Shown here piece after piece: positions 1 through 54,604 of a stretch of DNA of 63,212 nt. The position numbers and the translations under genes are program-made. Source of the DNA: Dicyema japonicum. Taxonomy: Eukaryota; Animalia; Dicyemida. The stretch lies in assembly GCA_011109175.1 (NCBI GenBank), contig RDEW01000098.1, forward strand, positions 18,715 to 81,926. The letters are read 5' to 3'. Position 1 is the stretch's first letter. Each line of letters opens with the position of its first letter. The notes beneath the pieces are model-generated. The model did not search any database and was not told the origin of the DNA. It worked only from the letters and a program-made list of their open reading frames with translations.

Positions 1-1626
1 GACTTAACATCTGAAGCTACTGCTAAAGCCGGCCGTGCCTTGTTAACGTCTATCACCTTGCTGCTCACTCGAATAGTTAATGGTGATATTCCAAAATTTG
101 CTAGAGACCTTCTTTTTTGTGGACATCTATTGGCATTCCGAAATGGATATGGAGGGGTCCGCCCAATTGCGATCGGTACATATTTTCGAAGGCTTGCTGC
201 TAAAATCGCTGCCCGGAAAGTCTTCACAATGTTGCTGAAGAGCTGTTTCCGACTCAACATGAGGTGGGAGTGACCGGCGGTTGCGAGGCAGCAGTCCACG
301 CCGCGAGGAGGTTCTTCAATAACAATAATTCACAGATCCAAAGGCTAGGCCTGAAGCTTGATATGTCAAATGCCTTTAACAGGCTGAAGAGAGACTGTAT
401 TTTGGAAACCTGTTGGAAGAGAACTCCAGAAATTGACCGACTTTTACACTTATCGTATAGGACGGACTCAGCCTTAGTTTACGGAAACGATATCGTTTAT
501 TCACGCACAAACATTCAGCAGGGAGACCCTCTAGGGCCTTTGCTTTTTGCAATGACAATTGACACAATGGCACGAAGCATAAACTGTAAACTCAACCTGT
601 GGTACATAAACGACGCTACAATAGCTTGCCCATGGGTTTACGGAAACGATATCGTTTATTCACGCACAAACATTCAGCAAGGAGACCCTCTAGGGCCTTT
701 GCTTTTTACAATGACAATTGACACAATGGCACGAAGCATAAACTGTGAACTCAATTTGTGGTACTTATACGACGCTACAATATCTGGCCCATGGGAGAAC
801 GTATATCAGGATTTTTCTTTTACCATTCCAGCTCTAAACGAATTGGGTCTAAGTGTCAACGTTATGAAATCGAAACTGATCAATATTTCTTTCTCATTTC
901 CAAACTTTTCTACTGCCTGCGAAGAATTCAAATTCCAACTTCCAGCATATCCTCCTTGGACCAGGTACACTTCCTTGGCTGCCCTCTCGGAAACGACGAG
1001 CTGGAAAATTGCCTTACCAGTAAGAATAATGAAGTTGAAGCCTTTACAAAGAGAGTTTCATTTTTGGATCCACATGTGTCTTTCTTCTTGCACAAGAAAT
1101 GTATTTCCGTGTCGAAGATGATGTACATTTTGAGATGTTCACCATTTTTTGAACACCGGAATGCACTATTGTCGGCTGATGGGACTCTGAGACGATCGGC
1201 GGAGTCAATCTGAATGTCAAATTCGATGATCTGGGCTAGTATGTGCAAACAACCTGAGAAATGGGGCATTGTTGAGATCCCTCCTTGAAGCCGCCCTGCC
1301 TGCCTATTTTTTATTTCTTGCGAGCTGCAGTCGCTTGGCCCAAGCAGTTCTACGTAAACAACCAGACATACTTTGGTTTCGGAGCTTGACAGAGTTTGCA
1401 TGTTGTGGGGTGACTTGGACTTGGAATTCCCGTCGAACTTCGCTTGGCAGAAGAGTTGGGATTCAATCGCATGTATGAGCACTCTGGAGCCGCGAAGAAA
1501 AGCGCCAACCAACACCGACTAGCAAGCATTAAGTCGGCCGCACATCGCGGAAATGGAGTCTGGCTCGAGGCTTTACCTTGCCCACATCTGGAGACCCTCC
1601 TTGACGAAAACAGGTGGCACTGCGCC
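1..1626 (+). mobile_element. CRE-like RLE non-LTR retrotransposon, family A, degraded body (RT and thumb, ending just before the zinc knuckle)
   Basis: Frameshifted ORFs carry VRPIAIG..RRLAAK, GCEAAVHA, KLDMSNAFN and QQGDPLGPLLF. The catalytic motif is degenerate (YIND/YLYD). Homology stops at GGTGGCACTGCGCC. Confidence 0.85.
477..794 (+). repeat. In-frame 159-bp (53-codon) tandem duplication inside the RT
   Basis: VYGNDIVYSRTNIQQGDPLGPLLF..WY..DATI..PW occurs twice (477-635, 636-794). The paralog near 53270-53430 has one copy. Confidence 0.9.
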
Positions 1627-3252
1627 ATTTCCGGAATTATAATATTGATTAAATTTTAATTGAAATGACAGTTATGACAGCAGATGACAGCTGTCATAGG
1701 TAACGTCTGTGGCTCGGTAACTGCTATGGCTCGCGACACATGGAACAAAGGATGGAGGCATATAGCAAGTCGATCGTGTTTAAGACTTTCGAAAGTAATA
1801 AATCAATAGTGTCATATGATTAAGGTCATCTCAATGTCACACAAGTCCATCAAGAATAGCATGAAAAATGATTTTTTACATCCCCCATGGCACAGCGCAT
1901 CACTTGAGACCGGTGGATCACATGGATAACTATATAGATGTTTAAATTATAGTTTAAGGTTAAAGTTGATATGTTTTTATTAGGTCAGGCCAGTTTCAAT
2001 TATTTCTGCTCAAATTCTACTTGTTTGTCTACATTGGTATTCTTGGAGTATGTAGTGCCTCATGGCTTATGGAATTTCAATTTTGATCTTCTATAAGATT
2101 AATTCTCTAAGACCAAAAATTGTCCGCTTACCGATTTTCTGCTCAAATACTCCGTGGTAGAATATACATACTGAGAGTACTATTAAGACACTTTTAGAGA
2201 AGTGTCAACCACTCAACAAACTATTAAATCTTTATTAGCCAAACAAGATTATTCAGTTTAGGAGCAGACTAGACGTTTGACAGTCTTTCCACATTCATTA
2301 CTATATATTTCTTCTAATTGACAGGATGGATCATTTTGGGGTAATGTCGAATCTTCACATTCTTCATTTATTATTGCGGCTATTTTCTGAAATATAAACT
2401 AACCAATAGGCAGGAACACAATCAGTAAGAGAAATATCAACTTCATCAGCTAAATAGCGCAGTTAAGTAGTAAATACTTCGTAAATCGTTATTAAACCAA
2501 TCTAATATGAATTTCTATTGATTGAATTTTCTTCCTGGAAAACATTTATTCTTCAATCTGTCATGGAAAATACCGAAGGGATGAGAAAGAGCACGTGGTT
2601 GATCTAATGTAAACGACTCTTGTAGTGCGAGCTTACATGAAATGCGTGGATCCCATGGAGGAACTGAGCGAAGATGAAGTGGTTACTGAGACAACAAAGC
2701 TCACCTGTGGTTAATTGATCAAGAGGTTGACGTACCGATGGATGAGCCCTGTCTTCTTTTTTCGTGTGAGTATTACTATGTGAACCCCTCGGAGATATTG
2801 GAAACCCGAAATTTTGAACGATGGAATCGACGAATGCTCGTAGGATTTTTGTTAGATCCCGTCCAGACCAAAGTTGGATGAAAAAAAAGCTTTACTTTTA
2901 CGCAGAGCCATAGCTCCTGCTCAGGCAGGATACACTTTTTAAGTAGAGAACACTTATCACAACTAATCGTAGAGGAAGAACTAAGGAATGCTCTCGGACG
3001 ATACAGCAGAAAGTTCTAGCTAGGGGCCATATGCCTCTTGCCTGACATTCATTGAACAAACACAATAAGGATTGTATATTAACGTGTTTTGCCTAATAAG
3101 AACTCCAAAAGTACTATGTTTTACCAGAATAAAGCAGGTCTAAGAGAAAGCAGCAGAAAATCGATGATTATAAAAATTAACTAAAATGAATTAATGGAGT
3201 CCGTTCTACCTCCTCTTTGAACCAGACCGACCACGCTTGCAGGGTCTTAGTA

Positions 3253-10035: not shown

Positions 10036-10547
10036 TTATGTATTATTCTGTATTTTCCAAATTTTCCGCAAATTCGACATAAATAGGGAACATTCATGCG
10101 TGCATTTATTTGCATTTTTCATGGAAAATCGATTGTTTCCTGAAGTAACAATTTTCGTATCATTGAGTGGAGAACTAAAGTTCGCTCAGGATTACCAGTG
10201 GATGTTGTGATGGAAGTATTTTTAAGTCGTTAAACTTACAATTGTTCCCCAAGGAGACGCACAGTGCTTGGCGGAGTAGGATAAAGATCTCGACTTTTCC
10301 TACTCCAGTAGAGGGCTCCCTAAGATGGCGGGTATGGATGGATATGATGCTAGAAAAAGATGCGTCTCAGTCTGACCGTGGAAAATAGGAAGACAAAACG
10401 ATAAGAGTTATCGTTTAATTATGCAATCCCAGTGTCCGTGCAGCGATTCCACCGACTATTTGCCTTGGAACCGTAGATTAATCATTAGGGAGGAAATAAT
10501 AAGACATTTTTTAAGATATTAAAAAAATTTTTTTAATAAAATTAAAC

Positions 10548-10727
10548 GGCTGAGTTCTTTGAGAACTCGGAGGATTGCTTTCCAGAAAGAAAAGGGATCA
10601 ACGAGAAGGGTTATGGCTAAGACAAAAGATTGGAATAGCCATACTCCGAGGGAATTCGTTCGCAATCCACGCAGCAGGCTTCCTCAACTGACATTTGTTT
10701 AATTGTTAAAAAAATTTTTGTTAAAAA
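10548..10727 (+). mobile_element. Short 3'-end copy of CRE family B with TSD
   Basis: Matches 30270-30420. Flanked by the direct repeat AATAAAATTAAAC (10535-10547, 10728-10740). Confidence 0.8.
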
Positions 10728-11149
10728 AATAAAATTAAACCACTCTTATCATATCTTTTAATAACATAATTTTCAATATCTCCCTTTACAGAAGTAGAAC
10801 TGATCTTTTTAAAATCTGCATAACGTTCTTTGATTAAATAACGTGAGTTATGCAATTTTTTTGAAATTAGATTTTAACCATTGATATTTCATAATTTTAG
10901 AGTTTATGAAGGCAAATTTCCATTCATTATTGATTGCTTCACATTGGCAACAATAATCCACCCTCTTCAAAATTGTTACTGTGTCTTTTATTGCAAGGAG
11001 ATTTTCGGAATAATAAATGCTAAGAAACTACCCATCTGAGAAAATTACATATGGAGGTAATTTAATACAATCCCTAATTATAAGCCCTAACACTATCTTC
11101 AAACCCTAACCTTTATCCCTAAACCTAAAAAATGTCATAAAATCTATCC

Positions 11150-13199: not shown

Positions 13200-13740
13200 T
13201 AATTAAATTAAAACAGCAATTCATCTAAAGTGGTCCCCGCTGATTTTATCGACGTTGCGCTGCGTCTCAAGATTGCAACAGAGATCAACTGGAGAAACCA
13301 CGGGGTCTCACATGCAACGTGGCTTTTTAGTGTTGCTAGGCGTTCAAGTTTCTCTAGGAAAAGAAGCGATTTTCCACTTATTCGTCCAGTTGTCTCGACC
13401 ACAATGAGATAGAAAGTGAACCGATCGTGCAATGCTTCATTTTTTTCTCCTTTGCTTTTATTGTTTTTCCGCAGAATACAGTGTGACAACTGCGCTCCCG
13501 ACAATGTTGGATGGGCAAAGTGAGTCGACAGTGGTAGCATCCCAGACCAAAGGTTTCCCCTTTTCGAATAGGAAAATTGTGATCCCGTCGGGACGTTTTC
13601 TGTCTCCTCTGTCCAAGCCAACAGGTTTAAGTATGGCTGGGTATCCCGCAGACTCAAGGGCTCGATGAAAATTCAGTTGATTTTCTTTGATTGATAAGAC
13701 TTTCTTCTTTGCCATTCAACAGTTTGTAACCTAGAGCTTT
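13200..13740 (-). mobile_element. CRE-like family C, 3' RLE fragment
   Basis: RALESAGYP..LKPVGLDRGDRKRPDGITIF..GKPLVWDATTVD and ETTGRISG..LLFLEKL..QLISVAI. Confidence 0.9.
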
Positions 13741-18179: not shown

Positions 18180-21100
18180 AAATAGTAATTTAAATAATTA
18201 ATAATATTATAAGGAAAAAGAAAAAGAATAGTTAATTTTAATTCAGCTGTTGGAGATGCACAAGCTATTCCCACGGACAACAGCCAACGAGAGCCTCTCC
18301 TTGAGCCATCTCGTCTCACGAAGATCACCAGTTTTGTCAGTTAGTAGTTTTCCCAAATGGTTCAGGAACTTCAGCGTTTTAGGGCCAAAGTTCCCCGAAG
18401 TTTCAATCGCGACAGGTGCGAAAATGTACCTGTCGCTGATATCCGAGTATTAGCATTTTTTACTTCCTCTGCTTGAGAAGAAGGTCTGCCCGGTGAATAA
18501 TTTTTTTGCTTGGGGCGAAAGAGCAGACACAGGTCACATCCCATACAAGGTTTCTCCCTCGCTCAAAAGGAAAGGAGGTCATGCCGTCAGGGCGTCTTCC
18601 GTTGTCAAATAGACCAGTCGGTTCGATCCGGCAACGGAATCCAGCCGATTCTAATGCCCTCTTAATGATGCCGTTCATTGCCGAATGTCGAGAAGATCTG
18701 CCAATTCCGCTCCGGCATGAGAGGAGGTGGAGACCCAGTTCGTCCGATAGACAGCCACATTTGCACTTCGATTTGGTGCAAACAGGCAATCCGAGGTGTA
18801 GACATACAGCTGTACGGAGTGAGTCATCATCCAACAATCCACCAACTTCTTGACATGGGTAAACCCCAAGCCAAGATCCATCAACCGCCTCCCTCGAATT
18901 TTGGAAACAATCCAGGCGATGTCCATAGAGCCGGCTGACTAGGTTGGATGCCAGAGCATTCCATCTATGGATCATCCAAGACGATTGTTGGTCTGGATTA
19001 CGCGGCTCGCCAAGCCCTTCACTTCGCCACACGTCCATGTATTCAACCAAGTCATTGGACAGTTTCCGAGATGGAAGCTTTGAAAGAATTGAGTCCACTT
19101 GGTTTTTGCATGAAAGTTTTGAGGCAAAATACGCCGGGCCAGCAATTTGGCAGGGAGTAGTAAGACCGATTCCACCCAATGATATCGGTAATTGAGTCTG
19201 TATCCATCCAGGGGTGTCAAGAGAAACGTTAAGTACGAATTCAGTACATCTTTTGAGGCAATCAGAGTATTCCATTAAAAGGGAATCACACTTATAACAT
19301 GGTGCAGTCCTTAGTAAATAGTTTAATCTTGGAATGGACAAGCAGTTTCTCAATAGGAAGAGGGCAATATGGTTGTCAACATGCCGCAAACGGGTCTCAA
19401 AAGTACCGAGCTCTATTGTCCTTTCTTTAAACACGTCCACAATTTGGTCTTCGAATATAGGAGAACCAAGGAACAGAGACTCCCCAACTGGAACCGATGC
19501 ATAATTTTCGAGAGTGTATTTAAACTGGTCATTGTAGAAAGTAGTCAGATCGGGACTCAAATTGATCTTGATTAATTCACATTTGGCCTTGTTGACAGAA
19601 AGGCCAATCGCTTCGAATTCAGATATCAAACGACGCACGTCCTCCAAAACTGTATCTGGATGTCCACCAATGATTCCGTCATCCAAATACCATAAATTTA
19701 AAGGTGATTTTAAGCATGCGGCTACTCCTGGATCCCCAAAGCAAAGAGAAGAGGTCCAAGTGGGTCGCCTTGTTGAACACCAGTTCGTGATTTAATGATG
19801 GCATCGTGGAAAACCAATGATGATGGATTAGAATATGAAAGGCGAACAATCTCCCAAATATGTGGTAAATTTTTTTGGCATAACTCCAATAAATGATCTC
19901 TCCTTATGGAATTAAATGCGTTCTTAAGATCTACTTTGCAGACAACAACGTCCTCTTTGCATTCGGACGACGACGTGAAAAAACTCCTCACTGCGTGGAC
20001 ACAAGCCTCTGCACCGCCACGAACTCCAACGCCCATCTGTATAGGACTGAAAATAGGAAGTAATCTTTGAACCCCAGAAAAGCAAGCGACTTTAGCTGCA
20101 AGTCTCCTGAAACACGTTTCCAATAGCAATCGGTCTGACACCGCCGTCAGGCTTTCGGAGAGCAACAAGATTAGCAGAAAATAACATATCTCGACCGAAA
20201 GGAGACAAACATCCAGAAAGAATTTTGTTGATCAGTTCGCAAATAACATTCGAAAGATCCTTTCCGACAGATCCCATCATTGGAGCTGTGAGATCACGTA
20301 GGTGACCGGGTCTCAAGCCATCAATACCACCTCCACTACTAGGACGAAATGAACGCAGGGAGGTGATTATATCTTCGTTAGAGGCGAGCAATTGTTCCTC
20401 GTGGAAAGGTTTTATAGTTCTCAAGTCTTCGGGGGATCCGGGGTGTTTTTCTCGTAAAGACATGAGCGTTTCAGGGGTGTTTTTAAGTGTCCCAGGATCA
20501 CAAACTAATAGCCGTACAGCACCGCGAATATCGCCTTCCATAAGTTTCATCCTGATTAGTTTCTTTATTAAGCGAAGTTCCTCCGTTTTCGGACGCTTTG
20601 AACTCCGGGGTGCAATTTGAGTTGATTTTAAAGCAGTAAGTGACATTTTATGTTCATTTAGAAACAGTCTAACTCTCTTTTTGATATTCGTTGCGAGAGA
20701 AGTGGATGCTTCCGTTGGTCTTCTGATCCCAAGAGTGAGTGACGGGAAAAGGAAAAATTTGACCCATTCCGAAGAGACGGCGTCAGGCTTCAAAACATCC
20801 TTGATGGTGGAGATCAAGGCCTCGGCAACAGTTCTCGCACCTTTGGGTATCTTCACAGGAATGGTCACGTCCGAGCGCGTCCGAGAGACCAGTTTCAAAG
20901 CTTCATCAGGATCTGCAACAAGAGTAGGGTCAAACGGTTCAATGCAAGCAGCGTGACCATTAGGAAACCCCGAACCAATTCCAAGGCACGAGCGGCAGTG
21001 CCATACCCCAAGAGCACGGATAGAGGCCTGAGAGAGCTTCAAACACCCGATGTGGAAGAACACTCCACAGGCAGAACAAGAAATTCCAAACTTTCTCAAA

Positions 21101-21355
21101 TTGCTCATGTTGCAGGCAGAGCAATTAGACGATGACTTTTCGAGTAACATTCCACTGAATCAACAATAGGCGAAAATCAAGAATAGGGGAATAATCTCAA
21201 TAGGCGAAAATCAAGAATAGGGGATAATCTCAATAGGCGAAAATCAAGAATAGGAGAATAGTCTCAATAGGCGAAAATAGTCAATAAGAGAAAGTCAAAA
21301 ATAGGAAAATAATCACAATAGGCGAAAAACAACAACAACACACAACGACAACACG
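18180..21355 (-). mobile_element. Near full-length CRE-like RLE retrotransposon: PHD finger-RT-CCHC knuckle-PD-(D/E)xK endonuclease (coding about 21150 to 18243)
   Basis: PHD: C-x2-C..C-x2-C-x4-H-x2-C..W-x-C-x2-C. RT: VRPIAIG, GAEACVHA, DLKNAFN, QQGDPLGP, intact WYLDDG. Knuckle: CKCG..GLHLLSC. RLE: RH..N..RPDG..WDVT..KY..ETSG..RLSLAVVRGN. About four 1-nt frameshifts. Confidence 0.92.
21165..21330 (-). repeat. ~33-bp tandem repeats in the 5' UTR of the PHD-CRE element
   Basis: The unit AATAGGCGAAAATCAAGAATAGGG(G)ATAATCTC occurs three times nearly intact, plus degenerate copies, followed by a CAA-rich stretch. Confidence 0.9.
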
Positions 21356-22027
21356 TTTTTATTTTACAAATATTAATTGTACGATAGGACAAAGACACGT
21401 CAAATTTTGACTAATTTAAATTAATTTAATACTAGATATAATAATTTAAATTAATTTTTCTCCATATTATTTGTATCCCAAATTGTTATTTGTCACATCG
21501 TGATTATACATTGTTTCAATCTCAAGAACATTTATTGAGATTCCATCCAAATATTCTAAATATTGTTGATAAAAAGGATTCAAACAATGAACAAACATTC
21601 AATAGTATTAGTTTCCTCTGATGTACCCCTTAAAAATACTACATCTCCAAGTCAGCCAGTATTAAATAAATTTTTAATCTGATATTACTATCATGGATGC
21701 TGAAAATTTTAAAATGCATTCCATTGAACTTGTTGATGTGAAAAGGGATCTCTTGCTCTACCTCCTAACAAGTCAGCGTAGAAAGGCTGTTTTCTGGTCT
21801 AAAATTTATCAAATCAGACTTCGAGCTTTTATGAAGAAAGACTGTCGAAGTTATATTATTTCTAAAAAATAATAGTTAAATTTTCTTTTCTAAATGTTTT
21901 TTTTATATTTTCTGTTATTCTACAACGTTTGATTTTTTATATAATACAGAGTGGAGGAGTTCGAGTCGTATTATATTTACCGACTCCACAGCCTTGATGT
22001 CTCCAAAATCAGTATTGGGGGGTGGGG

Positions 22028-23771
22028 ATATAAATAGAAAACACAGACAAGAATCATTTGGGAGGCACAAAAGTTCAGAAATTATAAAATAGGCACAATT
22101 TGTAGCAATTCAAAAATTTATTTAAAAAATTCGAGAGCCGTTGGTATCCAATGACGGCTGAGTTTCTTGCTCGAACTCGGAGGATTGCTTCCAGAAAAAA
22201 GGCGATTAACGAGAAGAGTTATGGCTGTGACAAAAGATTTGAATGGCTATACTCCTAGGGAACTCGTTCGCGATCCACGCAGCCGACTTCCTCAACTAAC
22301 ATTTGTTTCTTTGTTAAATAATTGTCATTAATAAAAAAATTAATCAAATATATGTGACATTATTGTTATTTACGCTTTGACCTTGAATTTAACCTTCGAT
22401 TAAGCTCTTGACACTGATTAAATCAATTTTTAAGATATTTTTGCGCACTATAGATAAAATTATCGAATGAAAATTGCCAATATTGTCAAAGATAGAATAT
22501 AAAAAATTCTGATTTTTAATAAATAATATAATATCCGAAGATATATCAAGACTAAATAGATTTAGATTTTCTTAGAAAATGCAGCAATTTTTCAGTTTCA
22601 GGAAATACTCTTAAATTAATGATAGTGTCTTATATTATGAACAATCTGAAGGAAAACCAGACATTGGTGAATCCTCAAATGACTGAGAATCCATGAAACT
22701 ACATTGTGACGAATTCATTTATTTTTCACTATGGCTTTAATAAATGGAAGAGTATTGCAAAATAATTTTTGCATAATCAAAAGAAAAATAATTCAAGAAG
22801 TAATATCTCATGTACAAATGCAAGCTTTAAAGACAAATCTCCATTAGTCAACAAGTAGCGAAAAAAACAGAACAATTGATTATAGAACGTTTATTACATT
22901 GCTTACTTTTAGCTATCAAGTTGATTTAGTCGATCGTTGTTCTATTCAGAAATAAATGATTACAATAAAATTTATGAATGTATATATTTTCAAAATTTTG
23001 CTTTGCTAAAAATAGAAAGCAAAAAGCAATTATAGTCTCAGCATCATTGAACACTAAATTTCAATTCTTATGGTCAATTAAAGATATTGCATGTCAGATA
23101 GTAAAAAGAATTTGTTAAGTCAGAAATAAAGTCATTAATGAAAAATTTAAAATAATTCATAAATGATAGTCCAATGAATGCAGAATAACAGGGACATGAG
23201 CGTTGCAATAAACAATTTGCCGATGGTTCAAAAGAAATGTTAAGTACAATATATTTTCTTGCTATAAAAATGTCATATTTTTGTTTTCCAAAAAAGAAAT
23301 ATATTTTTATAATATGAGGAATAATAGAAGAACATGAAAATCAATTTATTGCAAATGACAATATCTTGAAAAATGAATAAAAAATCGAAAAAAAATCAGT
23401 TGAAATAAAGTGTTATTATATAATACTGATACAAATAAAAAACAAAAAAAACGAAATTAGACTTTTATTATAAACAGAGTTTATTGTCGAGGAATTGATT
23501 TAGATAACAAAATAAAAATAAAAAATAAATATGGAAATGAACTCAGTGTTTGGATCACAATCTAAAAAAATTTGATACTTTTGAATAACAGACAGTTTTT
23601 GAGTATAAATTTGAACAGTTGTTGATATTTTTTTAAACTAATAAAATTTTTAAGGAAAAAGTATCAAATAGCTGCGAAAGCTCATAGTGGACTAGTGTAA
23701 TTGGAAAATTTTTCTCAATAGGCCTGTCGATTAGGGTCTATAAGTTGCATTGAAAAATAAAAAATATTGTC
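22028..23771 (+). repeat. Direct repeat R1 (about 1.75 kb): CRE-B 3' end plus integrase relic
   Basis: Colinear with 24797-26590. Differences are mostly 1-nt indels. Confidence 0.9.
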
Positions 23772-24796
23772 ATGGAGGAAACCACTCTCTTCTATGTGCT
23801 CGTTCAACCTCTTGAAGATAACTCGCTCAGCATCTTGGAAATAGAGCAAATGAGGCTGATCGTCTATAGTTGAAAGAATTCCCCGACTTTCCGGTTTGAG
23901 TACCATTCTGATAATAGAACATTTCCATCATATTGGGACATATCCATGAGTAATACTCGCGTTAAATAGATTCTTCAGCACAAGCAGCAGATCATTTGGC
24001 CTTCCTTGAACAATCTCATACTTACATGATCATGTCAGGGGCGTTGGCCTTGCATGTTCTGATCGCATTATAACGTCCTCTGTCGTTATCATTTCGGTAT
24101 CATTAAGATCATCCAAAGAGTACGTTAGGAAGTCTTCTGTAGCTTTCAACTTTTCCCTGGGATTAGCTCCATTGGTTGACGCCCTGATATGCTCCAGTTG
24201 CTTCTTAAAGATAACTGGAGCTTCTTCCATAGGTTTTGATCCTCTTCTGGTTTGTCAAAGAGATTCTGTATCTTCATGTTCTGGCCAGTTAATCTTCTGT
24301 AGAACTTTCAGAACGAGAAATCTTTGTAGTTAGTTGGCTTGCCTCGTTTCAAATGTTGTTCTTGGACAGTTTGTTCCCTCTTCAATGATTTTCTGATTAT
24401 TTTTAGATGGTCGTCAGTGCAATCCTGTCCATCCAGTCAACAAAACTTGAGTTTGTTCCTTATGCGTTTCTTTCATTAATCATAGATAATATGAGGGAGA
24501 TTTGATGCTCTTCATGATTGGTCTTGAAGTTCTCCTTTTGCGTAGAGTGATAACTATTTCTTCATCATAATTGAGAGGTCTCTGTCTATGTTGTCAATAT
24601 CATTTCGGGAATGAGGTCCATCCTTCCAGTTTTTGAGGTATCTAGATATGTATCTTCTATAGTGTTCTCAACTTAGTCTGATAAGTCGTAGCCAGTAAAC
24701 ATTGATTCCATGGTGTCTGGAGCCAGGTTTAGTGTTATTTCTTGTGGGATCTGGTCGCTCCCGATGTCCTGCATGATCATTGGTTGCTCCACATAA
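23772..24796 (-). mobile_element. Degraded non-LTR fragment (pre-RT linker and RT start) between R1 and R2
   Basis: ERVIFKRLNEHIEESGFLH resembles the LINE RT motif ERII..RL..H.E..G.L. Confidence 0.5.
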
Positions 24797-26590
24797 TATA
24801 AATAAGGAACACAGACAAGAATCATTTGGAATACAAAGTTTCAGAATTAATAAAATAGCACAAAATTTGCAGCAATTTCAAAAATTTATTAAAAATTCTA
24901 GAGCGTTGGTACAATGACGGCTGTGTTCTTGCTCGAACTCGGAGGATGCTTCCAGAAAAAAGGCGATAACGAGAAGATTATGGCTGTTGACAAAGATTTA
25001 ATGGCTATACTCTAGGAACTCGTTCGCGATCCACGCAGCCGACTTCCTCAACAATTTGTTTCTTTGTTAAATAATTGTCATTAATAAAAAAATTAATCAC
25101 AAATATGTGCCATTATTGTTATTTACGCTTTGACCTTGAATTTAACCTTCGATCAAGCTCTTGACACTGATTAATTCAATTTTAAGATATTTTGCGCACT
25201 ATAGATAGAATTATCGGAATGAAAATTGCCAATATTGTCAAAGATAGAATATAAAAATATTCTTGATTTTTAATAAATAATACAATATCCGAAGATATAT
25301 CAAGACTAAATAGATTTAGTTTTCTTAGAAAATGCAGCAATTTTCAGTTTCAGGAAATACTCTTAAATTTAATGATAGGTGTCTTATATTATGAATAATC
25401 TGAAGGAAACCAGACATTGGTGAATCCCTCAAATGACTGAGAATCCATGAAACTACATTGTGAACGAATTCATTCTATTTTTCACTATGGCTTTAATAAA
25501 TGGAAGAGTATTGCAAAAATAATTTTTCATAATAAAAGAAAAATAATTCAAGAAGTAATATCGTCATGTCATAAATGCAAGCTTTTAAAGACGAAATCTC
25601 CATTAGTCAACAAAGTAGCGAAAAACCACGAGAACAATTGATTATAGAACGGTTTATTACATTGCTTACTTTTAGCTATCAAGTTAATTTAGTCGATCGT
25701 CGTTCTATTCAGAAATAAATGATTACAATAAAATCTTATGAATGTCATAGATATTTATCAAAATTTTGCTTTGCTAAAAAATAAAGCAAAGAAACAGTTA
25801 TAGTTTCAAAATCATTGAACACTATATTGCAATCTTATGGTCAATTAAAAATTCTGCAGTCTGACAACAAAACAGAATTTGTTAAGTTAGAAATAAAGTC
25901 ATTAAATGAAGATATTGAAATAATTCATAAAAGGGTACGTCCAATGAATGCAGAATAACAGGGACAAGTGGAGCGTTGCAATCGAACAATTTGCCGATGG
26001 TTCCAAAAAGAAATGTATACCAGTACAATATATCTATTCATTCTGCTATAAATATGTCACTTTTTTTGGCTTTTTCCAAACAAAAGGAAATAATATTTCT
26101 TATTTAATAATGAGGAAATAATAAAGAACATGAAAATCAATTTATTGCAAATGACAAATATCTTGAAAGAATGAATAAAAAAATCGAAAAAAATATCAGT
26201 TGGAAATAATGTGTTATTGATAATAACTGATACAAATCAAAAAACCAAAAAAACGAAAATTAGAATCTTTTTATTATAAACAGAGTTTTATTGTCGAGGA
26301 ATTGATTTCAGAAAACAAAATAAAAATAAAAAATAAATATAAAAATGAACTCAGGGGTTGGATCACAACCTAAAAAAATTTGATACTTTTTGAATAACAG
26401 ACAGTTTTTGAGTAATAAATTTGAACAGTTGTTGATATTTTTTAAAACCAATAAAACATTTTTAAGGAAAAAAGTATCAAAAGTACCGCGGTCTAAAGCC
26501 TCATAGGGGACTAGTAGTAATTGGAAAATTTTCTGAATAGGCCTTTCGATTAGGGTCTATAAGTTGCATTGCAAAATAAAAAATATTGTC
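24797..26590 (+). repeat. Direct repeat R2, containing a KRBA2/Ginger-like integrase relic (about 25380-26300)
   Basis: HYGFNK..EVISSCHKCK (HHCC finger), ILQSDNKTEF and QGQVERCNRTI. Confidence 0.85.
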
Positions 26591-26731: not shown

Positions 26732-29700
26732 CAGTAAACTCTCTCAAATATGTTACTCTTAAATTTGCCAATTCTGAAATTTCATTTTTATCGATTTTTT
26801 CTATTTTTCAATGATATTTGCCAATTCTGAAAATTGCCAACATTTTAAAATATTATTTTTATTTTTTATTTTTATATATTTTTAAAAATTTAAATACTTT
26901 AAAGCAAGCATGTGTCGGAATGTTCCTGTTGGAGGCTACACCAGACTTTCAATTGCTCAAAAAATGGAAATATTGCGGTATAAAGAAAACGATAAATTAC
27001 CTTCATCTCAGGCGATATGCAACATATTTTCTTCTATTTTTAAAAGAGAATCCAGAATATTAATGAATGCAGAATCTCTTTTATTTCAGTTCAAGAACAG
27101 AAATCCTGAACTAAAAACTTGTAAAATATTAAAATACCTTTAGCTAGATGAAAATTTAGTAGATTAGATGGATACAATGGAATCAAAAGGTACACTATTT
27201 ACTCTAACATTATGGTGGTTTATTGAACGATTCTCTATTATTACAAAAGGTAGAATTCTTCGCTAAAGAACTTTCGTTAACTAATTTTAAAAATTCTTAC
27301 GGGTTTCTGGAGAAATAAAAAAAACAGATTTCGAATGCGTAAATTACACGGCGAAATGCGCACTGAAAAACATGTGGGTATTGATGGCTTTTAAAAGAAT
27401 TTGAAGAAGTTTCAGAGTTACTCGTCTGAAAATATTTATAACTTGAATCACATAAGAAGTTAAATCTTAGGGATACTGTATTGTTTGTAAAAATGGCATG
27501 GGAAGATGTGAAATCTCAAACAATTTCAAACTGTTTTAAACGTTTAGAACGTACAGAATGCGAATCAGAATTTACTAACATAAATGTAACAGATGAAATT
27601 GTATCCAAAACAGATATTTATGATCCTATTGAAATAAAAGAATTTATTTCAATTGATTACAGTGAAATAGAGGATTGATGAAGAAGAGAAATTAATTCCT
27701 ATTGAGGACCAAGAAGAATCCGGTTGTGTAGAAGTACATCAGTCATTAAACAAGGCTGAAATGCTTTGAAAATTAAGAGAGAACTAAAATTATCTAGAAA
27801 ACATTGAAAATGACAATGATGCAGAATTCATTACTTCAATAAGAAGATATAAAGAAAATATCAAAAATTCTAATAAGAGGGAATTTGGAATTGATTAGTA
27901 CTTTAATAAAATTTAATTAATTTTTGTTTCCTTAGTAAAAAATATTTTTTCTTTAAAAATAAAATTTATTAATTTAAATTGTTTAATTATCTTTAAATAA
28001 ATCAACGATAATCTCAGATGGAAAATAAAGAACGAAAAGAAGACAACGTACGAGATCAAAGCCAGTACGGACAAATCAAGTATGTCTTTTATTTGGACAA
28101 TCGAATAAAAGGAAATTTGGAATAAACTGCACACTATGTGAATCATTTGTCTATTTGGGATACATAAAAATGAGTAAAGCTGAGACCCTGTCGAGTTGGC
28201 TGCGCCCCTCTTGTATTGGAATGGAGGCCCACAGGCGGGAAACAATAGCTCAGCCAAACTTACACTGCCACATACAGACCACACTCTCTTGAAGATCTCG
28301 AACCTCCGGAAAGCATGAAGATCCCAGTAAAAATCCTAAAGGAGTACGAATTGCAGCAGCAACGTGTCTTTCAAATTCCATTAATCACGCACTATCTTCT
28401 GACAGTTGGGAATCCTGGCTAAAACTTATATGCTTTGCACCTGTCGCACTCGGAATACCTACAAAGGAATCTGAAGATAGTAATAAAGAAACAAACTCCC
28501 GACTCAACTTATCCGAGAAACTGAAACGAAACATAATCAATTTTAGCTGTCATAACATACACGCAATACTTGAACAGCCACTTAATGTCAATGAGGTCGA
28601 AACCAGAGGAGCATACACCAACTAAAGGAGAAAGTAAACCGAAACTTCTAGGGCGACGCGGGCAGCTCTATGGGTTATCACGTCCGATGGCACAGTATTG
28701 TCTTGTAACCCTGAGGTCTTAAATACCTTAATACTGAAGCACCCAGATGACTGACTATGAAAAGTTTTTGAATCCTGAAGGAACCCGGAGATTATCATTA
28801 CAGAATCCGAAGTGCGCCACGGAATAACTTCCTTCGCCGCTAGCAGCGGTGGAGGCTTGGAAGGGTTACGTATATTAAGGACCTTACGTCCCCATACACC
28901 TCGGAAGCTTGACGCTGAATTGTCAAATCAATTACGGACCTAATCAGAAAAATGGTTAACGGCGACATCTCAGAGTATGCCAGAGAATTGCTCTTCTTGC
29001 AAGGCTACTTGCTTTCAAAAATCCCAATGGAGGAATCCGCTCCATTGCGATCAGGAACTATATTAGAAGACTTGCAGCAAAGGTAGATCGACCCTGGTGA
29101 GCCGACAACTTGGAGAGGAGTTCTTTCTTAAACAAATGGTCTTAGTATCCAGAACGGATGTGATGCTTCGGTTCATGCAGAAGGCGTTTTTTCACATAGA
29201 AAAATATCTCAAATGAATGCATTGGAATCAAGTTGGACATAACGAATGCCTTCAATTCTCTCAGAAGAGATAAAATTATGGAAAATTGTTGGAAGAGGGC
29301 TCCAAAGCTTTTCCCTCTTGTCAAATTATCTTATGGGGACGATACGTATCTGTTTTTTGAAAATGAAATTATTAAATCAAAAACGGGGATCCAACAAGGA
29401 GATCCGCTCGGACCTCTCTTATTTTCCTTGATTTATTGATGATGTTTGAGATCAATTGATGCCCAGCTAAATCTCTGGTACCTCGATGATGCCACAATTG
29501 AAGGATCATTCATCTCTCTCAAGCTGCAGCTATTGGACACGGCAAGTCCTTCATAACACTATTGGACTTTGCTGGAATGAGTCATTTTACGAAGCTTGTC
29601 GGAAATGGAACGGGTCCGGACTCAAAATCCCCGAAGACACAACAAAGCAAAGTAATCGGGATAACATTGTCTGCTCCAAAATTTTGGAAGACCTTAAAAA

Positions 29701-30579
29701 AGAAGCAAATCAACATCGTCTGGCTTGTTTGGTGTCAGCTTCAAGTAGAGGGAGTGGAGCTTGGCTTGGTGCAATACCTTGCCCCTAACCTCGGGACCTT
29801 ATTGGACGCCGATTCTTTGAGGATTGAAATTGGACAAAGGCTGGGACAAAATGTTTGCCAGGAGCACCGATGCAGATCGGAAAAACTGTCGATGTTAAGG
29901 GAGTGCACCCGAATATCCTGCAGAAGAAGCTCCGAAGAGGACCACGTCATGCTGCTCTGAACGATGTGATTGTCAGAGCTCTGAAAGCTACAAGCTCCTT
30001 AACACAGTTTGAACCAGTGGGTCTTGATCGAGGAGATGAAAAGAGACCTGACGGGATGACCCTTTTCCCCTTCACGTATGGAGATCTTTGGTCTGGACGC
30101 AACTTGTGTACACGTTCTCAAGCACGAATATTTACAAATCGGTTCAAACACCTGGAGCAGCTGCTTCGACTGCGGAGAACTTAAAAATAAAGAAATATTC
30201 TTGCCTCGGGAATCGCTACCGATTTACTCCTGTTGCGACCGAATCATCGGAAGTCGTTGGTTCAATGACGGCTGAGTATTTGCGAGAACTTAGAGGAATG
30301 CTTGCCAAAAACAAAAGGGATCAACGAGAAAGATTTTGGCTTAGACAAAAGATTGGATTGGCCAAACTCCGAGAACTCGTTCGCAATCCACGCAGCAGGC
30401 TTCCTCAACTGACATTTGTTCAATAGTCAAAAAAAATAAATAAAATAAAACAAAATTGCATTCGTAAATAAATTAATTAATTAAAACTTCAATTAAAATT
30501 TTATTCTGAAATCTGCCAATTCTCAAATTTGCCACAATTTTGCTGGAACCAACAACGGCAAATTTGAGAGAGTTTACTG
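26732..30579 (+). mobile_element. pogo/Tigger-like DNA transposon interrupted by CRE family B
   Basis: Perfect 18-bp TIRs (CAGTAAACTCTCTCAAAT / ATTTGAGAGAGTTTACTG), both TA-flanked. HTH RLSIAQKMEIL and C-terminal FVKMAWEDVKSQTISNCFKR. Confidence 0.9.
27990..30460 (+). mobile_element. CRE-like family B element, degraded and internally deleted
   Basis: Degenerate PHD near 28100-28220, IRSIAIRNY, DITNAFN, QQGDPLGP, WYLDDA, GAWLGAIP, RHAALND, KRPDGMT and WLRQKIG. Confidence 0.9.
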
Positions 30580-49439: not shown

Positions 49440-50375
49440 AAAATGAGACATTATTTTCAATATTCTCCAACAAAGCACAAATCCGACGAGAAACAGTGTT
49501 ATCTTACAAAGGTATCTTCATTATTTTTTGTTCATATTTATGACCAAACATATTCCGAGCAATAATACGACAAGCAGGGATTATCAAGTTTTCGCTAATA
49601 GTGTGAGGTTTTAGTTGATTTGCAATCAATTCTGAGATCAGGTATGAACATTTCAATGATTCCTTTATGTTTACAAAAGTTTCACTGAACATCATTTGAC
49701 TAGATCTACAATTCATAGTAAAAATTAAATAATGCTTGTGATGTTTTTTTCAAATTGATAAAATAATCCACAGATTTTTTGGAATAGTCTGAATGCTTGG
49801 AAGTAAAATGTATCTAGTTTGCTAGGAACCATAGCATCATTTGCCAAGACTTCCATGCAAATTATACATTGAGGTAGTTTATTTTTATCTTTGCATACAT
49901 ATCCAAATGACAAATAAGAATCTTTATAAGAACGATGAACTGATTTATCCATAAGCACGTTGATACAACCTTATTAAAAAATTAATTAATAATGGTTAAC
50001 CAATGTTAATGTCATTTAATATATAATAAAAAAATGATTATTTTAATTTTAGTAATTATTTTAATTTGTTTATCTTTTTAAATTAATTAGGTCAAAAAAT
50101 GTCAGTTGAGGAAGCCTGCTGCGTGGATTGCGAACGAGTTCCCTCGGAGTATGGCTATTCCAATCTTTTGTCTTAGCCATAGCCCTTCTCGTTGTTTAAT
50201 TGTTAAAAAAATTTAATTAATAAAAAAAAAAAAAAAAAAAAAATTTAGTAAAGTTTTAATTTGTTTATCTTTTTAAATTAATTAGGTCAAAAAATGTAGA
50301 TAAATTTATTCAAATTTGTATTTGGCAGGCGGCACACTAGAAATTGTCTCCGGCACACCGTTTGACAACCTTTAA
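49440..50375 (-). mobile_element. Buster/ZBED8-type hAT element, 5' part
   Basis: RSYKDSYLSFG..LPQCIICMEVLANDAMVPSKL (BED finger) and SYLIS..IA..KPHTISENLIIPAC. Terminus rc GGTTGTCAAACGGTGTGCCG. Confidence 0.8.
50059..50297 (+). mobile_element. CRE family B insertion with 5' inversion, poly(A) and 44-bp TSD
   Basis: TSD 50059-50102 = 50254-50297. Inverted family-B segment 50103-50194, sense tail 50192-50243 ending in about 22 A. Confidence 0.88.
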
Positions 50376-50376
50376 G

Positions 50377-50565
50377 TTAGGGATTAGGATTTTGGTTAGA
50401 ATTCGGGATTAGGGTTAGGGATTTGGGTTAAGGATTTGGGTTCGGGATTTGGATTAGGGTTATGGTTAGAGATTAAGGTTAAGATTACGGTTAGGGATTG
50501 GGATTAGGGTTATTGTTATGGTTTGGGTTAGGGTTATGGTAAGGGTTTTGGTTAGAGATTAGGAT
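50377..50565 (+). repeat. Degenerate TTAGGG-like hexamer array (about 30 units)
   Basis: GGGTTA/GGATTA/GGATTT hexamer periodicity. Confidence 0.85.
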
Positions 50566-50602
50566 CCACGTACGCCGGAGTTCTATGTACGGACGGTGAC
50601 AA

Positions 50603-51520: not shown

Positions 51521-51589
51521 TATTATAAATTAATATTATCGTATAATTAATCTTTATATCGGAATAATAATAATTTATAAAAATAGAAA

Positions 51590-52208
51590 ATTATAATATT
51601 TTTTACTTAATAAGTATTATTATTGTAAAAGATTAATAATGAAAATTACGCAATAATTAGGACGACAGAATGGCAAAGGCGTTACCTCTGATAGTCTCCA
51701 TTTCGAGCCTCTGTCTTAACCAGAGTCCTTCCTTGGCTTGCACTTTTTTGAGGCGAGTTTGCTTCTAATGCTGTCGAGAAAAACTTTAGTCTTCGCGCGT
51801 ACAATTCCAGTTGTCTTCCCAGCAATGTGAACGAAATGGTAATGGTCTCCGAGGAATTTTTACTAATGGATCTTCTCGACCTCCGCCTGGTCGGCTGGGT
51901 CTCCAGCGGAGTGCATCGCCGTCAGCAATTTGGCTTCTGAGAAGGTGTTCACACACGTTGCGTCTCAGACAAGTGATTTTCCGTGGGAGTATGGGAATAA
52001 CGTCATTCCATTCGGTCTCTTCCGTCGCCTCTGTCAATGGTTCCAACTGGGCCGGAAATCCCGCAGCCTTGAGGGCTCGAAAGATAATGTCATTGAGGTT
52101 GCGTGGCGCGGGGCTCTACCAGCACTCCGTCGGCAAGAGAGTTGATATAATCCTTTCGTATCAACCTCCCCGTCGCAACGGTATTTCTGTCTCTGGCATA
52201 TGTCCACT
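51590..52208 (-). mobile_element. CRE-like 3' segment (knuckle and RLE), probably the missing end of family A
   Basis: DICQRQKYRCDGEVDTKGLYQLSC, LNDIIFRALKAAG, KRPNGMT, DAT and WLRQRLEMETIRGNAFAILSS-stop. Confidence 0.85.
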
Positions 52209-52217
52209 GAATTCAGT

Positions 52218-52500
52218 CATTCATCTAACTCTTATTCAGGACAAATCGAACCATTTTTGTTGCGCCTATCGTAATCAAAAAAGTAGACGTATTCCTCTGA
52301 GAATACCAAAGGCCACTCGAATTCTCGCTGCTGAATGCCTCACGTCATTAATTGATAAAGCCATCAGCATCAGCGACCAGGCATCTTGGATACGTCTACT
52401 TCAACGCAGCAAAACTCTGGAATCGAGCCTGAGCAAGTATTTCGGTGCAAACAGTTGTCTACAGAAGCTGGGAGTAAACAGGAAGATTCTAAAGCATTTC

Positions 52501-52532
<32 letters not shown>

Positions 52533-54277
52533 GAACCGAAAACTAATGAAAAGGGACTTTCGCGCAGCTGTAAGAGTGGTGTCTTGTGACGAAACGCTGT
52601 TGAAACCGTGCCGTGAAGTCTTGGAGTTATTGAGAAGGGAGCACCCTGTTCCACCACCGAACCAGTGGAACTTGACAATTCCAGAAGATCTCCCGGCATT
52701 TACTCCCACGGAATTTGAAGTAGTGCGTGGAATAATGTCTTTTGCACCAGTAGTTGCGGAGTCCTGGACGGACTGCGCCCAAGCCATTTTAAAAAACTAA
52801 ACATCTGAAGCTACTGCTAAAGCCGGCCGTGCCTTGTTAACGTCTATCACCTTGCTGCTCACTCAAATAGTTAATGGTGATATTCCAAAATTTGCTAGAG
52901 ACCTTCTTTTTTGTGGACATCTATTGGCATTCCGAAATGGATATGGAGGGGTCCGCCCAATTGCGATCGGTACATATTTTCGAAGGCTTGCTGCTAAAAT
53001 CGCTGCCCGGAAAGTCTTCACAATGTTGCTGAAGAGCTGTTTCCGACTCAACTTGATGTGGGAGTGACCGGCGGTTGCGAGGCAGCAGTCCACGCCGGAG
53101 GAGTTACTTCAACAACAATAATTCACAGATCCAAAGGCTCGGCCTGAAGCTTGATATGTCAAATGCCTTTAAAATGCTGAAGAGAGACTGTATTTTGGAA
53201 TCCTGTTAGAAGAGAGCTCCAGAAATTGACTGACTTTTACACTCATCGTATGAGACGGACTCAGCTCTAGTTTACGGAAACGATATCGTTTATTTTATAT
53301 CGTTTATTCACGCACAAACATTCAGTAGGGCCTTTGCTTTTTACAATGACAATTGACACAATGGCACAAAGCATAAACTGTGAACTCAATTTGTGGTACT
53401 TATACGACGCTACAATAGCTGGCCAGGGGAGAACGTATATCAGGATATTTCTTTTACCATTCCAGCTATAAACGAATTGGGTTTAATTGTCAACGTTTTT
53501 GAAATCGAAACTGATCTATTTTTTTTCTCATTTCCAAACTTTTTTATTGCCTGCCAAGAATTCAAATTACAACTTCCAGCATATCCTCCTTGGAAAAGGT
53601 ACACTTCCTTGGCTGCCCTCTCGGAAACGACGAGCTAGAAAATTGCCTTACTAGTAAGAATAATGAAGTTAAAGCCTTTACAAAGAGAGTTTCATTTTTG
53701 GATCCACATGTGTCTTTCTTCTTGCAAGAAATGTATTTCCGTGTCAAAATGATGTACATTTTGAGCTGTTCACCATTTTTTGAACACCGGAATGCACTAT
53801 TGTCGGCTGATGGGACTCTAAGACGATCGGCGGAGTCAATCTGAATGTCAAATTCGATGATCTGGGCTAGACTAAGTGCAAACAACCGGCGAGAAATGGG
53901 GGCATTGAGTTGAGATCCCTCTTTGAAGTCGCCCTGCCTGCCTGCTTTTCATTTTTACGAGCTGCAGTCTCTTGGCACAAGCAGTTCTACGTAAAACAAC
54001 CAGACATACTTTGGATTTGGAGCTTGACAGAGTTTACAACTTGTGGGGTGACTTGGACTTGGAATTCCCGTCGAACGTCGCTTGGCAGAAGAGTTGGGAT
54101 TCAATCGCATATATGAGCACTATGGAGACCACGAAGAAAAGCGCCAACCAACACCGACTAGCAAGTATTAAGTCGTCGCACATCGCAGAAATGGAGTCTG
54201 GCTCGAGGCCCTACCTTCCCCACATCTGGAGAACCTCCTTGACGAAAACAGCTTGAGGATCGGGGTGGCACTGCGCC
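52218..54277 (+). mobile_element. CRE family A body, copy 2, inverted relative to its 3' segment
   Basis: IPLRIPKATR, DFRAAVRVV, VRPIAIG and DMSNAF; ends at SLRIGVALR. Confidence 0.88.
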
Positions 54278-54604
54278 ATTTCCGGAATTATAATATTGAT
54301 TAAATTTTAATAAAATGACAGTTATAACAGCAGATGACAGATGTCATAGGTAACGTCTGTGGCTCGCGACACATGGAACAAAGGATGGAGCATATAGCAA
54401 GTCGATCGTGTTTAAGACTTTTGAAAGTAATAAATCAATAGTGTCATAGGATTAAGGTCCTCTCAATGTCACACAAGTCCATCAAGAATAAGCATGAAAA
54501 ATGATTTTTTACATCATCCATGGCACAGCGCATCACTTGAGACCGGTGGATCACATGGATAACTATATAGATGTTTAAATTATAGTTTAAGGTTAAAGTT
54601 GATA

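Follow-up and report, generated by a model that had tools for sequence, protein, structure and literature searches.

The contig RDEW01000098.1 of Dicyema japonicum raises the question of how a short repeat fragment came to lie partly backwards and partly forwards within a single long target-site duplication. The window, by which we mean the whole stretch of 63,212 nucleotides that was analysed, carries at 50059-50297 an insertion of a repeat called here family B, which the first-pass annotation had read as a twin-priming-type 5' inversion made by an element with a restriction-like endonuclease (RLE). The insertion lies approximately 100 bp upstream of the ATG of an open reading frame belonging to the host element:

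49725-49958, minus strand: start of the decayed host-element ORF, hAT/Buster-like zinc-finger N-terminus (feature similarity)

The first 77 residues of this ORF resemble the zf-BED, SPIN-DOC and FAM200-ZBED5 clusters by feature similarity, and Pfam searches with pieces of the ORF gave no match. The earlier designation of the host as "Buster" is consistent with this likeness. Just downstream of the insertion, a degenerate telomere-like minisatellite (50376-50573; TTAGGG/TTTGGG variants with a unit spacing of 12-26 nt) lies inside the host element or adjoins it.

The insert is 151 bp long and is flanked by a direct repeat (50059-50102 versus 50254-50297), which is identical at 44 of 44 positions. 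In a random control with 56 pairs of 190-nt window segments, the longest word common to a pair was 16 nt with one mismatch allowed; the 44-bp repeat is therefore far beyond chance. From left to right, the insert is composed of 92 bp of family B in reverse orientation, a sense 27-nt 3'UTR, a run of 22 adenines (A22) and ten extra bases. The locus is divided into the following features:

50048-50058, plus strand: TTTAGTAA and then TTA, probably extending the left duplication; the 8-mer is repeated at 50244-50251
50059-50102, plus strand: left 44-bp target-site duplication, its last 6 nt (AAATGT) being the inferred second primer
50103-50194, minus strand: family-B segment in inverted orientation, covering the final 92 nt of the RT-RLE ORF with its TGA stop
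50192-50194, no strand assigned: inner microhomology TTG
50195-50243, plus strand: sense 3'UTR (50195-50221) and A22 (50222-50243)
50244-50253, plus strand: TTTAGTAAAG, most likely the altered left end of a duplication of about 55 bp (comparison with 50048-50058)
50254-50297, plus strand: right 44-bp target-site duplication

Three further independent copies of family B are found in the window, all on the plus strand (10546-10740, 22136-22343 and 30252-30455), the last of these as the tail of a longer element:

10546-10740, plus strand: closest reference copy, 5'-truncated, with the ORF end, the 3'UTR and a short A run
22136-22343, plus strand: independent 5'-truncated copy
28098-30455, plus strand: long copy (PHD..RT..CCHC-RLE), decayed and internally deleted, whose nuclease frame continues into the tail at 30252-30455

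The copy at 24904-25096 represents the same insertion as 22136-22343, carried in a segmental duplication of 2.76 kb. This duplication (22028-22500 and 24796-25252, period approximately 2.76 kb) shows 90.6% identity and has the family-B insertion in both of its copies.

A BLAST search of the insert against the window aligned insert bases 1-92 with 10690-10599 of the reference copy in reverse (97.8% identity) and bases 90-131 with 10695-10734 in the sense direction. In a base-by-base walk, 50103-50194 is the reverse complement of reference positions 10690..10599 with two mismatches and no indels, and the sense part begins at 10695/10698 and continues through the 3'UTR into A22. The inverted part corresponds to reference 10599-10690(96) and the sense part starts from 10695/98, with an overlap of at most 2 nt and no loss in element coordinates. 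The left repeat ends with AAATGT (50097-50102), which is the reverse complement of ACATTT at 10691-10696 of the reference; the chance of such a 6-nt complementarity at the priming point is about 1e-3. At the inner junction, TTG (50192-50194) belongs equally to both segments, closing the inverted one and opening the sense one. The inversion breakpoint sits at the stop codon of the family-B ORF, so that the final 92 nt of the ORF make up the flipped part, leaving for the sense part only 27 nt of unique 3'UTR and the poly(A).

These results bear out most of the anatomy described by the first-pass annotation, which had listed a 44-bp duplication, an inverted family-B segment of approximately 90 bp (92 bp in our alignment), the 6-nt AAATGT/ACATTT microhomology, a TTG shared at the internal junction and almost no loss between the segments. 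It had also placed the right duplication directly behind the sense tail and its poly(A). The tail and A22 are present, but the ten bases TTTAGTAAAG (50244-50253) intervene between A22 and the right 44-mer.

The first eight of these ten bases reappear at 50048-50055, just left of the left repeat, and therefore the target duplication is probably about 55 bp long rather than 44 bp, as judged from the sequence of the two flanks. Within this probable 55-bp duplication the left copy has TTA (50056-50058) and the right copy has AG (50252-50253), the remainder being identical. Contigs from paralogous copies of the host show no variant at 50048-50058, and for this reason TTA looks like the ancestral form at 50056-50058. 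A still longer duplication of 89 bp, suggested by the resemblance of 50014-50058 to 50211-50253, was rejected: ATTAATAAAAAAA is element sequence because the independent 22.3-kb copy has the same 3'UTR with ATTAATAAAAAAA included. A likeness between the DNA some tens of nt upstream of the insertion and the end of the element's own 3'UTR was observed at both young insertions, at 50014-50034 versus 50211-50229 (ATTTAAT..TAATAAAAAAA) and at 10517-10547 versus 10704-10740 (T[A/G]TTAAAAAAATTTTT); this could be a chance effect of AT-rich DNA or a target preference.

The geometry of the locus agrees with the twin-priming reading proposed earlier, in that one duplication encloses two abutting segments with a 6-nt primer-template microhomology and a 3-nt inner one. 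Since the flipped and sense parts abut without overlap under one duplication and have microhomology at both joints, we favour twin priming and regard as probable a single retrotransposition of family-B RNA into the 5' region of a decayed hAT/Buster-like transposon, primed from both nicked strands.

A mixed group of other origins, comprising snap-back of the cDNA, a later inversion between AAATGT and ACATTT, two separate insertions and misassembly, appears very improbable as a whole. R2 proteins in human cells do give snap-back 5' junctions (PMC11371274), but a snap-back would copy cDNA and duplicate the sense part in reverse, whereas the segments found here do not overlap; the base-by-base walk revealed no inverted duplicate of the sense cDNA, the mark of a snap-back, and no sequence common to the two parts. 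Although a simple truncated copy would have had a 6-bp inverted repeat available for a later inversion, recombination between inverted repeats would retain ACATTT at the inner junction, where it is absent. Two separate insertions would require an antisense fragment without its own 3' end to abut its neighbour to the base, which is unexpected.

Misassembly was considered with the public reads. The locus is present in four public runs as short Logan contigs, in which word depth is very high for both the host repeat and family B, and across these four runs neither a spanning read nor any of the short contigs from the very high-copy repeats crosses either junction, which leaves some room for an assembly error; the perfect 44-bp duplication, however, speaks against a chimeric assembly. 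The two breakpoints are confirmed indirectly, as canonical family-B contigs part from the locus at precisely these positions, 50097 and 50194. The summed depth of the two repeat copies in the public runs is close to that of the flanks, and the depth agrees with a single copy of the duplicated sequence in paralogues. In one short contig, 50093 is followed directly by 50290 with the 196 nt between them missing, and this contig looks like an empty site with a single 44-mer and an A run shorter by one base; the letters at its joint are marked as "not known", and it may come from a paralogue rather than from an allele. No second copy of the 5' region of the host element that could act as an empty site is found in the window.

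The family-B sequence forms the 3' terminus of the open reading frame of a non-LTR element with the order PHD-RT-CCHC-RLE. In the 10.6-kb copy the stop codon TGA occupies 10689-10691 and the tail reads ..LWLRQKIGIAILRGNSFAIHAAGFLN before the stop, and the tail peptide agrees with the conserved C-terminal QRGNA block of related proteins. The 3'UTR extends approximately 33 nt after the stop codon, and all family-B copies have their own A-rich tail. The region 28098-30455 matches the PHD..RT..CCHC-RLE frame of 18406-21159 on the minus strand (tblastn), and its open frame 30103-30423 aligns with residues 463-552 of the relative P0004 (E = 4e-12), passing from the nuclease E..K..KY motif into the family-B tail. 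The alternative classification of family B as a SINE was rejected, the tail being the coding 3' end of an RT-RLE ORF.

A profile built from 14 relatives matches the R2 structures 9nl3 and 9dou (E = 1e-13) over the RT palm, thumb, linker, CCHC and RLE, with the PD, DVT and E..K..KY motifs aligned; among CRE, NeSL, R2, R4 and Hero, solved structures exist for R2 alone. A profile search was required for this match, and the window copy alone gave none against the PDB (phmmer). The relatives contain RVT_1, and the N-terminal 352 aa of the 918-codon copy, an intact-looking relative in the window, have a PHD finger as the sole match and no APE domain. From the profile match to R2 from RT to RLE, the RVT_1 of the relatives and an N-terminus without APE, it follows that the family-B element is RLE-type. 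The earlier assignment to this class thus holds, with the family-B tail in frame with the nuclease domain and the profile of the relatives matching R2 from RT through RLE. A single-sequence structure prediction of the nuclease region had a mean pLDDT of 33 and was discarded.

The best named relative is a protein from Octopus sinensis with 37% identity. The CRE label given by the first-pass annotation is tentative. Specificity for spliced-leader RNA genes, as shown by classical CRE elements, was not observed among the window copies, which lie in unrelated AT-rich sites and in the hAT-like element. Relatives are also encoded on two contigs, L001 and L002 (the latter from Octopus sinensis), which have no family B and nothing in common with the window; for L002 (VCDQ01010986.1, 21 kb around the closest named relative), megablast found neither the family-B tail nor any sequence common with the window. 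Octopus sinensis may lack family B or have few copies of it, or the 21-kb sample may be too small. A metagenome scan for more copies found nothing, and the window ORFs were not found in the protein collection searched.

Other RLE-type sequences are also present in the window. A compact PHD-RT-CCHC-RLE element occupies 18243-21400 (minus strand), its 918-codon frame broken only by a frameshifted RT core; it has 5' tandem repeats of about 35-40 nt (21160-21330) and no evident poly(A). The 918-codon frame is open under genetic code table 6, but the use of a ciliate code was rejected, as the TAA codons cluster in the frameshifted RT core. Additional fragments include a piece spanning RT to linker at 1-1629 (plus strand), which is cut by the start of the window, and an isolated nuclease fragment at 13500-13664 (minus strand).

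The RLE-type nature of the family-B protein leaves the catalyst of this particular insertion to be considered. An APE-type LINE resident in this genome (L1-Tx1, RTE or CR1) could have taken up a polyadenylated family-B transcript and carried out the twin priming in trans. With its 22-nt poly(A) the insert would suit such an enzyme, but every family-B copy carries an A-rich tail of its own, and LINE proteins favour their own RNA. In addition, a TT/AAAA-type nick leaves an A-rich start of the duplication, whereas the duplication here begins with TTTAGTAA or TTTTAATT, neither of which is A-rich. Twin priming has been documented mainly for L1 (PMC4245944), and L1-Tx1, RTE and CR1 were recently active in Octopus vulgaris (PMC13282606); against this, the duplication of 44-55 bp far exceeds the 10-20 bp typical for APE-type LINEs (PMC6895275). 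Catalysis in trans is accordingly unlikely in our assessment. From the cis-preference and a target start unlike that of L1, the catalyst was most likely the element's own RLE-RT protein.

The length of the duplication is a separate problem. The first-pass annotation had proposed a widely staggered second nick as the rule for these enzymes, for which the window provides no support: the long stagger is seen in a single event, and the repeats at the other window copies do not exceed 13-16 nt. The 10.6-kb copy has an exact 13-mer AATAAAATTAAAC at 10535-10547 and 10728-10740, a candidate duplication at background level; at the 22-kb copy the flanking repeat is at most 10 nt, and the 30-kb copy has no clear flanking repeat. 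As no flanking repeat of the other window copies rises above background, the 44-55 bp stagger is more likely exceptional for this event than a property of the family. Long duplications as such have precedents among RLE elements, with 13 bp in R4 (PMC6895275) and 126 bp in R9 (PMC13486585), and target-site duplications are made by all CRE and R4 elements (PMC3636483).

The exceptional stagger may have a bearing on the inversion. Formation of a 5' inversion needs an exposed and sufficiently long 3' overhang (PMC4245944), and R2 with failed programmed second-strand nicking produces large target duplications (PMC13486585). A long single-stranded 3' overhang would be what permits second priming, and for these reasons we suggest that it was the long stagger that made this event invert.

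The same observations can be turned into an aberrant insertion, in which the programmed second nick failed, a host-made or spontaneous nick arose 44-55 nt away, and repair enzymes rather than the element's reverse transcriptase joined and copied the ends. R2 proteins deficient in second-strand nicking do give large duplications and need extra repair (PMC13486585), long duplications are missing at the other window copies, and the change from TTA to AG near the primer end suggests untidy processing. However, the 92-nt inverted segment is absent from the sense cDNA and must have been copied from RNA, for which a reverse transcriptase is needed. Because of this, the aberrant insertion differs from twin priming by the element only in the maker of the second nick, and we find it quite improbable.

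The junctions of the favoured twin-primed insertion are observed directly, and from them we infer the order of events and the identity of the enzyme. The flipped part corresponds to the 92 nt of RNA directly upstream of the sense part, and the upstream target strand terminates at its 3' end in AAATGT, which complements ACAUUU exactly where the sense part stops. A nick in the bottom strand would first prime cDNA synthesis across the poly(A) and the 3'UTR, after which the top strand would be nicked 44-55 nt downstream and unwound. Its 3' end would then pair by 6 nt with uncopied RNA just ahead of the first reverse transcriptase, and this second primer would be extended by 92 nt. Finally, the 3' ends of both cDNAs would pair via TTG/CAA and the gaps would be filled.

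For R2, it is first-strand synthesis that licenses nicking of the second strand (PMC11371274, PMC13486585). This nick is the work of a second protein subunit, recruited when domains are released from the 3' RNA by cDNA synthesis (PMC13486585). This dependence makes an early second nick less expected. With a 3'UTR of only 33 nt, licensing of the second nick could, speculatively, come very early, in agreement with a first cDNA ending precisely where the UTR meets the ORF. A more general version, in which PHD-RT-RLE elements make the second nick and open the duplex once the first strand has cleared only a short 3'UTR, with regular RNA priming and frequent twin priming as the outcome, is doubtful at present. 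If it were true, natural insertion footprints would report the timing of second-strand nicking outside R2.

A second inverted insertion in the window bears on recurrence. It belongs to another RLE-type family:

51601-54279, minus strand: second 5'-inverted RLE-type insertion, with the sense 3' part running from 52213 down to approximately 51601 and a flipped 2-kb body at 52228-54279

Its sense 3' part (0.6 kb) begins with VDICQRQKYRCDGEVD and the flipped body ends with ..LRIGVALR. These two motifs are adjacent in intact relatives (..LRLGLPVCAPHKCRCG..), from which it follows that the two parts abut within 1-2 codons without overlap. The 12-mer AATTATAATATT is found at 51589-51600 and 54286-54297 and may be the duplication of this insertion, its length being at background level. 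Inverted insertions therefore account for two of about eight RLE-type insertion events in the window, and the evidence consists of one clean event and one older event.

Twin priming was described for L1 by Ostertag and Kazazian in 2001, as cited in PMC4245944 and PMC6895275, and so far the process has been linked with L1 and human-cell host factors (PMC4245944). The searchable literature treats it in connection with L1 and mentions it for RLE elements only in passing or by citation; our search of this literature turned up no natural RLE-type LINE insertion described as twin-primed. Likewise, the biochemistry of how the second-strand nick is made and used comes almost exclusively from R2 (PMC13486585, PMC6895275). 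An RLE-type footprint of twin priming would mean that the 3' end of the top strand can reach the template RNA and that the second primer is extendable by a reverse transcriptase before the first strand passes about 60 nt. Should such footprints prove frequent in this genome, counting their breakpoints, duplication lengths and microhomologies would reveal in vivo how the nicks are spaced and timed for a whole group of LINEs. It would also bear on gene-insertion tools based on R2, which yield inverted 5' junctions as an unwanted by-product (PMC11371274).

In terms of relatives, CRE, R4-Dong and R2-Hero type LINEs are found among molluscs almost only in cephalopods (PMC10294476), and the annotation of Octopus vulgaris lists Dong-R4, Hero and R2 (PMC13282606). 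These cephalopod elements are RLE-type like family B, but the available text of their published descriptions does not mention an N-terminal PHD finger. Bdelloid rotifer R9 (126 bp), CRE/SLACS and R4 share with the present insertion an RLE-type enzyme and a top-strand nick located tens of bp downstream of the bottom-strand nick (PMC13486585, PMC3636483, PMC6895275). Their duplications are constant and the families are site-specific, whereas here a single insertion of a non-site-specific family has the long duplication and the other copies have none. The snap-back junctions formed by R2 protein in human cells (PRINT, PMC11371274) are similar in the RLE-type enzyme and in the joining of antisense element sequence to the upstream target. 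In contrast to the event described here, they are DNA-templated and duplicate cDNA, while the inverted part of the family-B insert is absent from the sense part and the second priming had to take place on RNA.

The closest parallel is the twin-primed L1 of mammals, in which a 5' part in inverted orientation and a sense 3' part ending in poly(A) are likewise enclosed by a single duplication, both microhomologies are present and little or nothing is lost at the breakpoint. L1 differs in using an APE endonuclease with a duplication of about 15 bp, compared with a restriction-like endonuclease of the R2 group and 44-55 bp here. Moreover, the whole family-B insert comprises only 151 bp with a breakpoint 33 nt from the poly(A). 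Thus, the mechanism itself is known, and what is new at this locus is the class of enzyme, the shortness of the sense arm and the length of the duplication.
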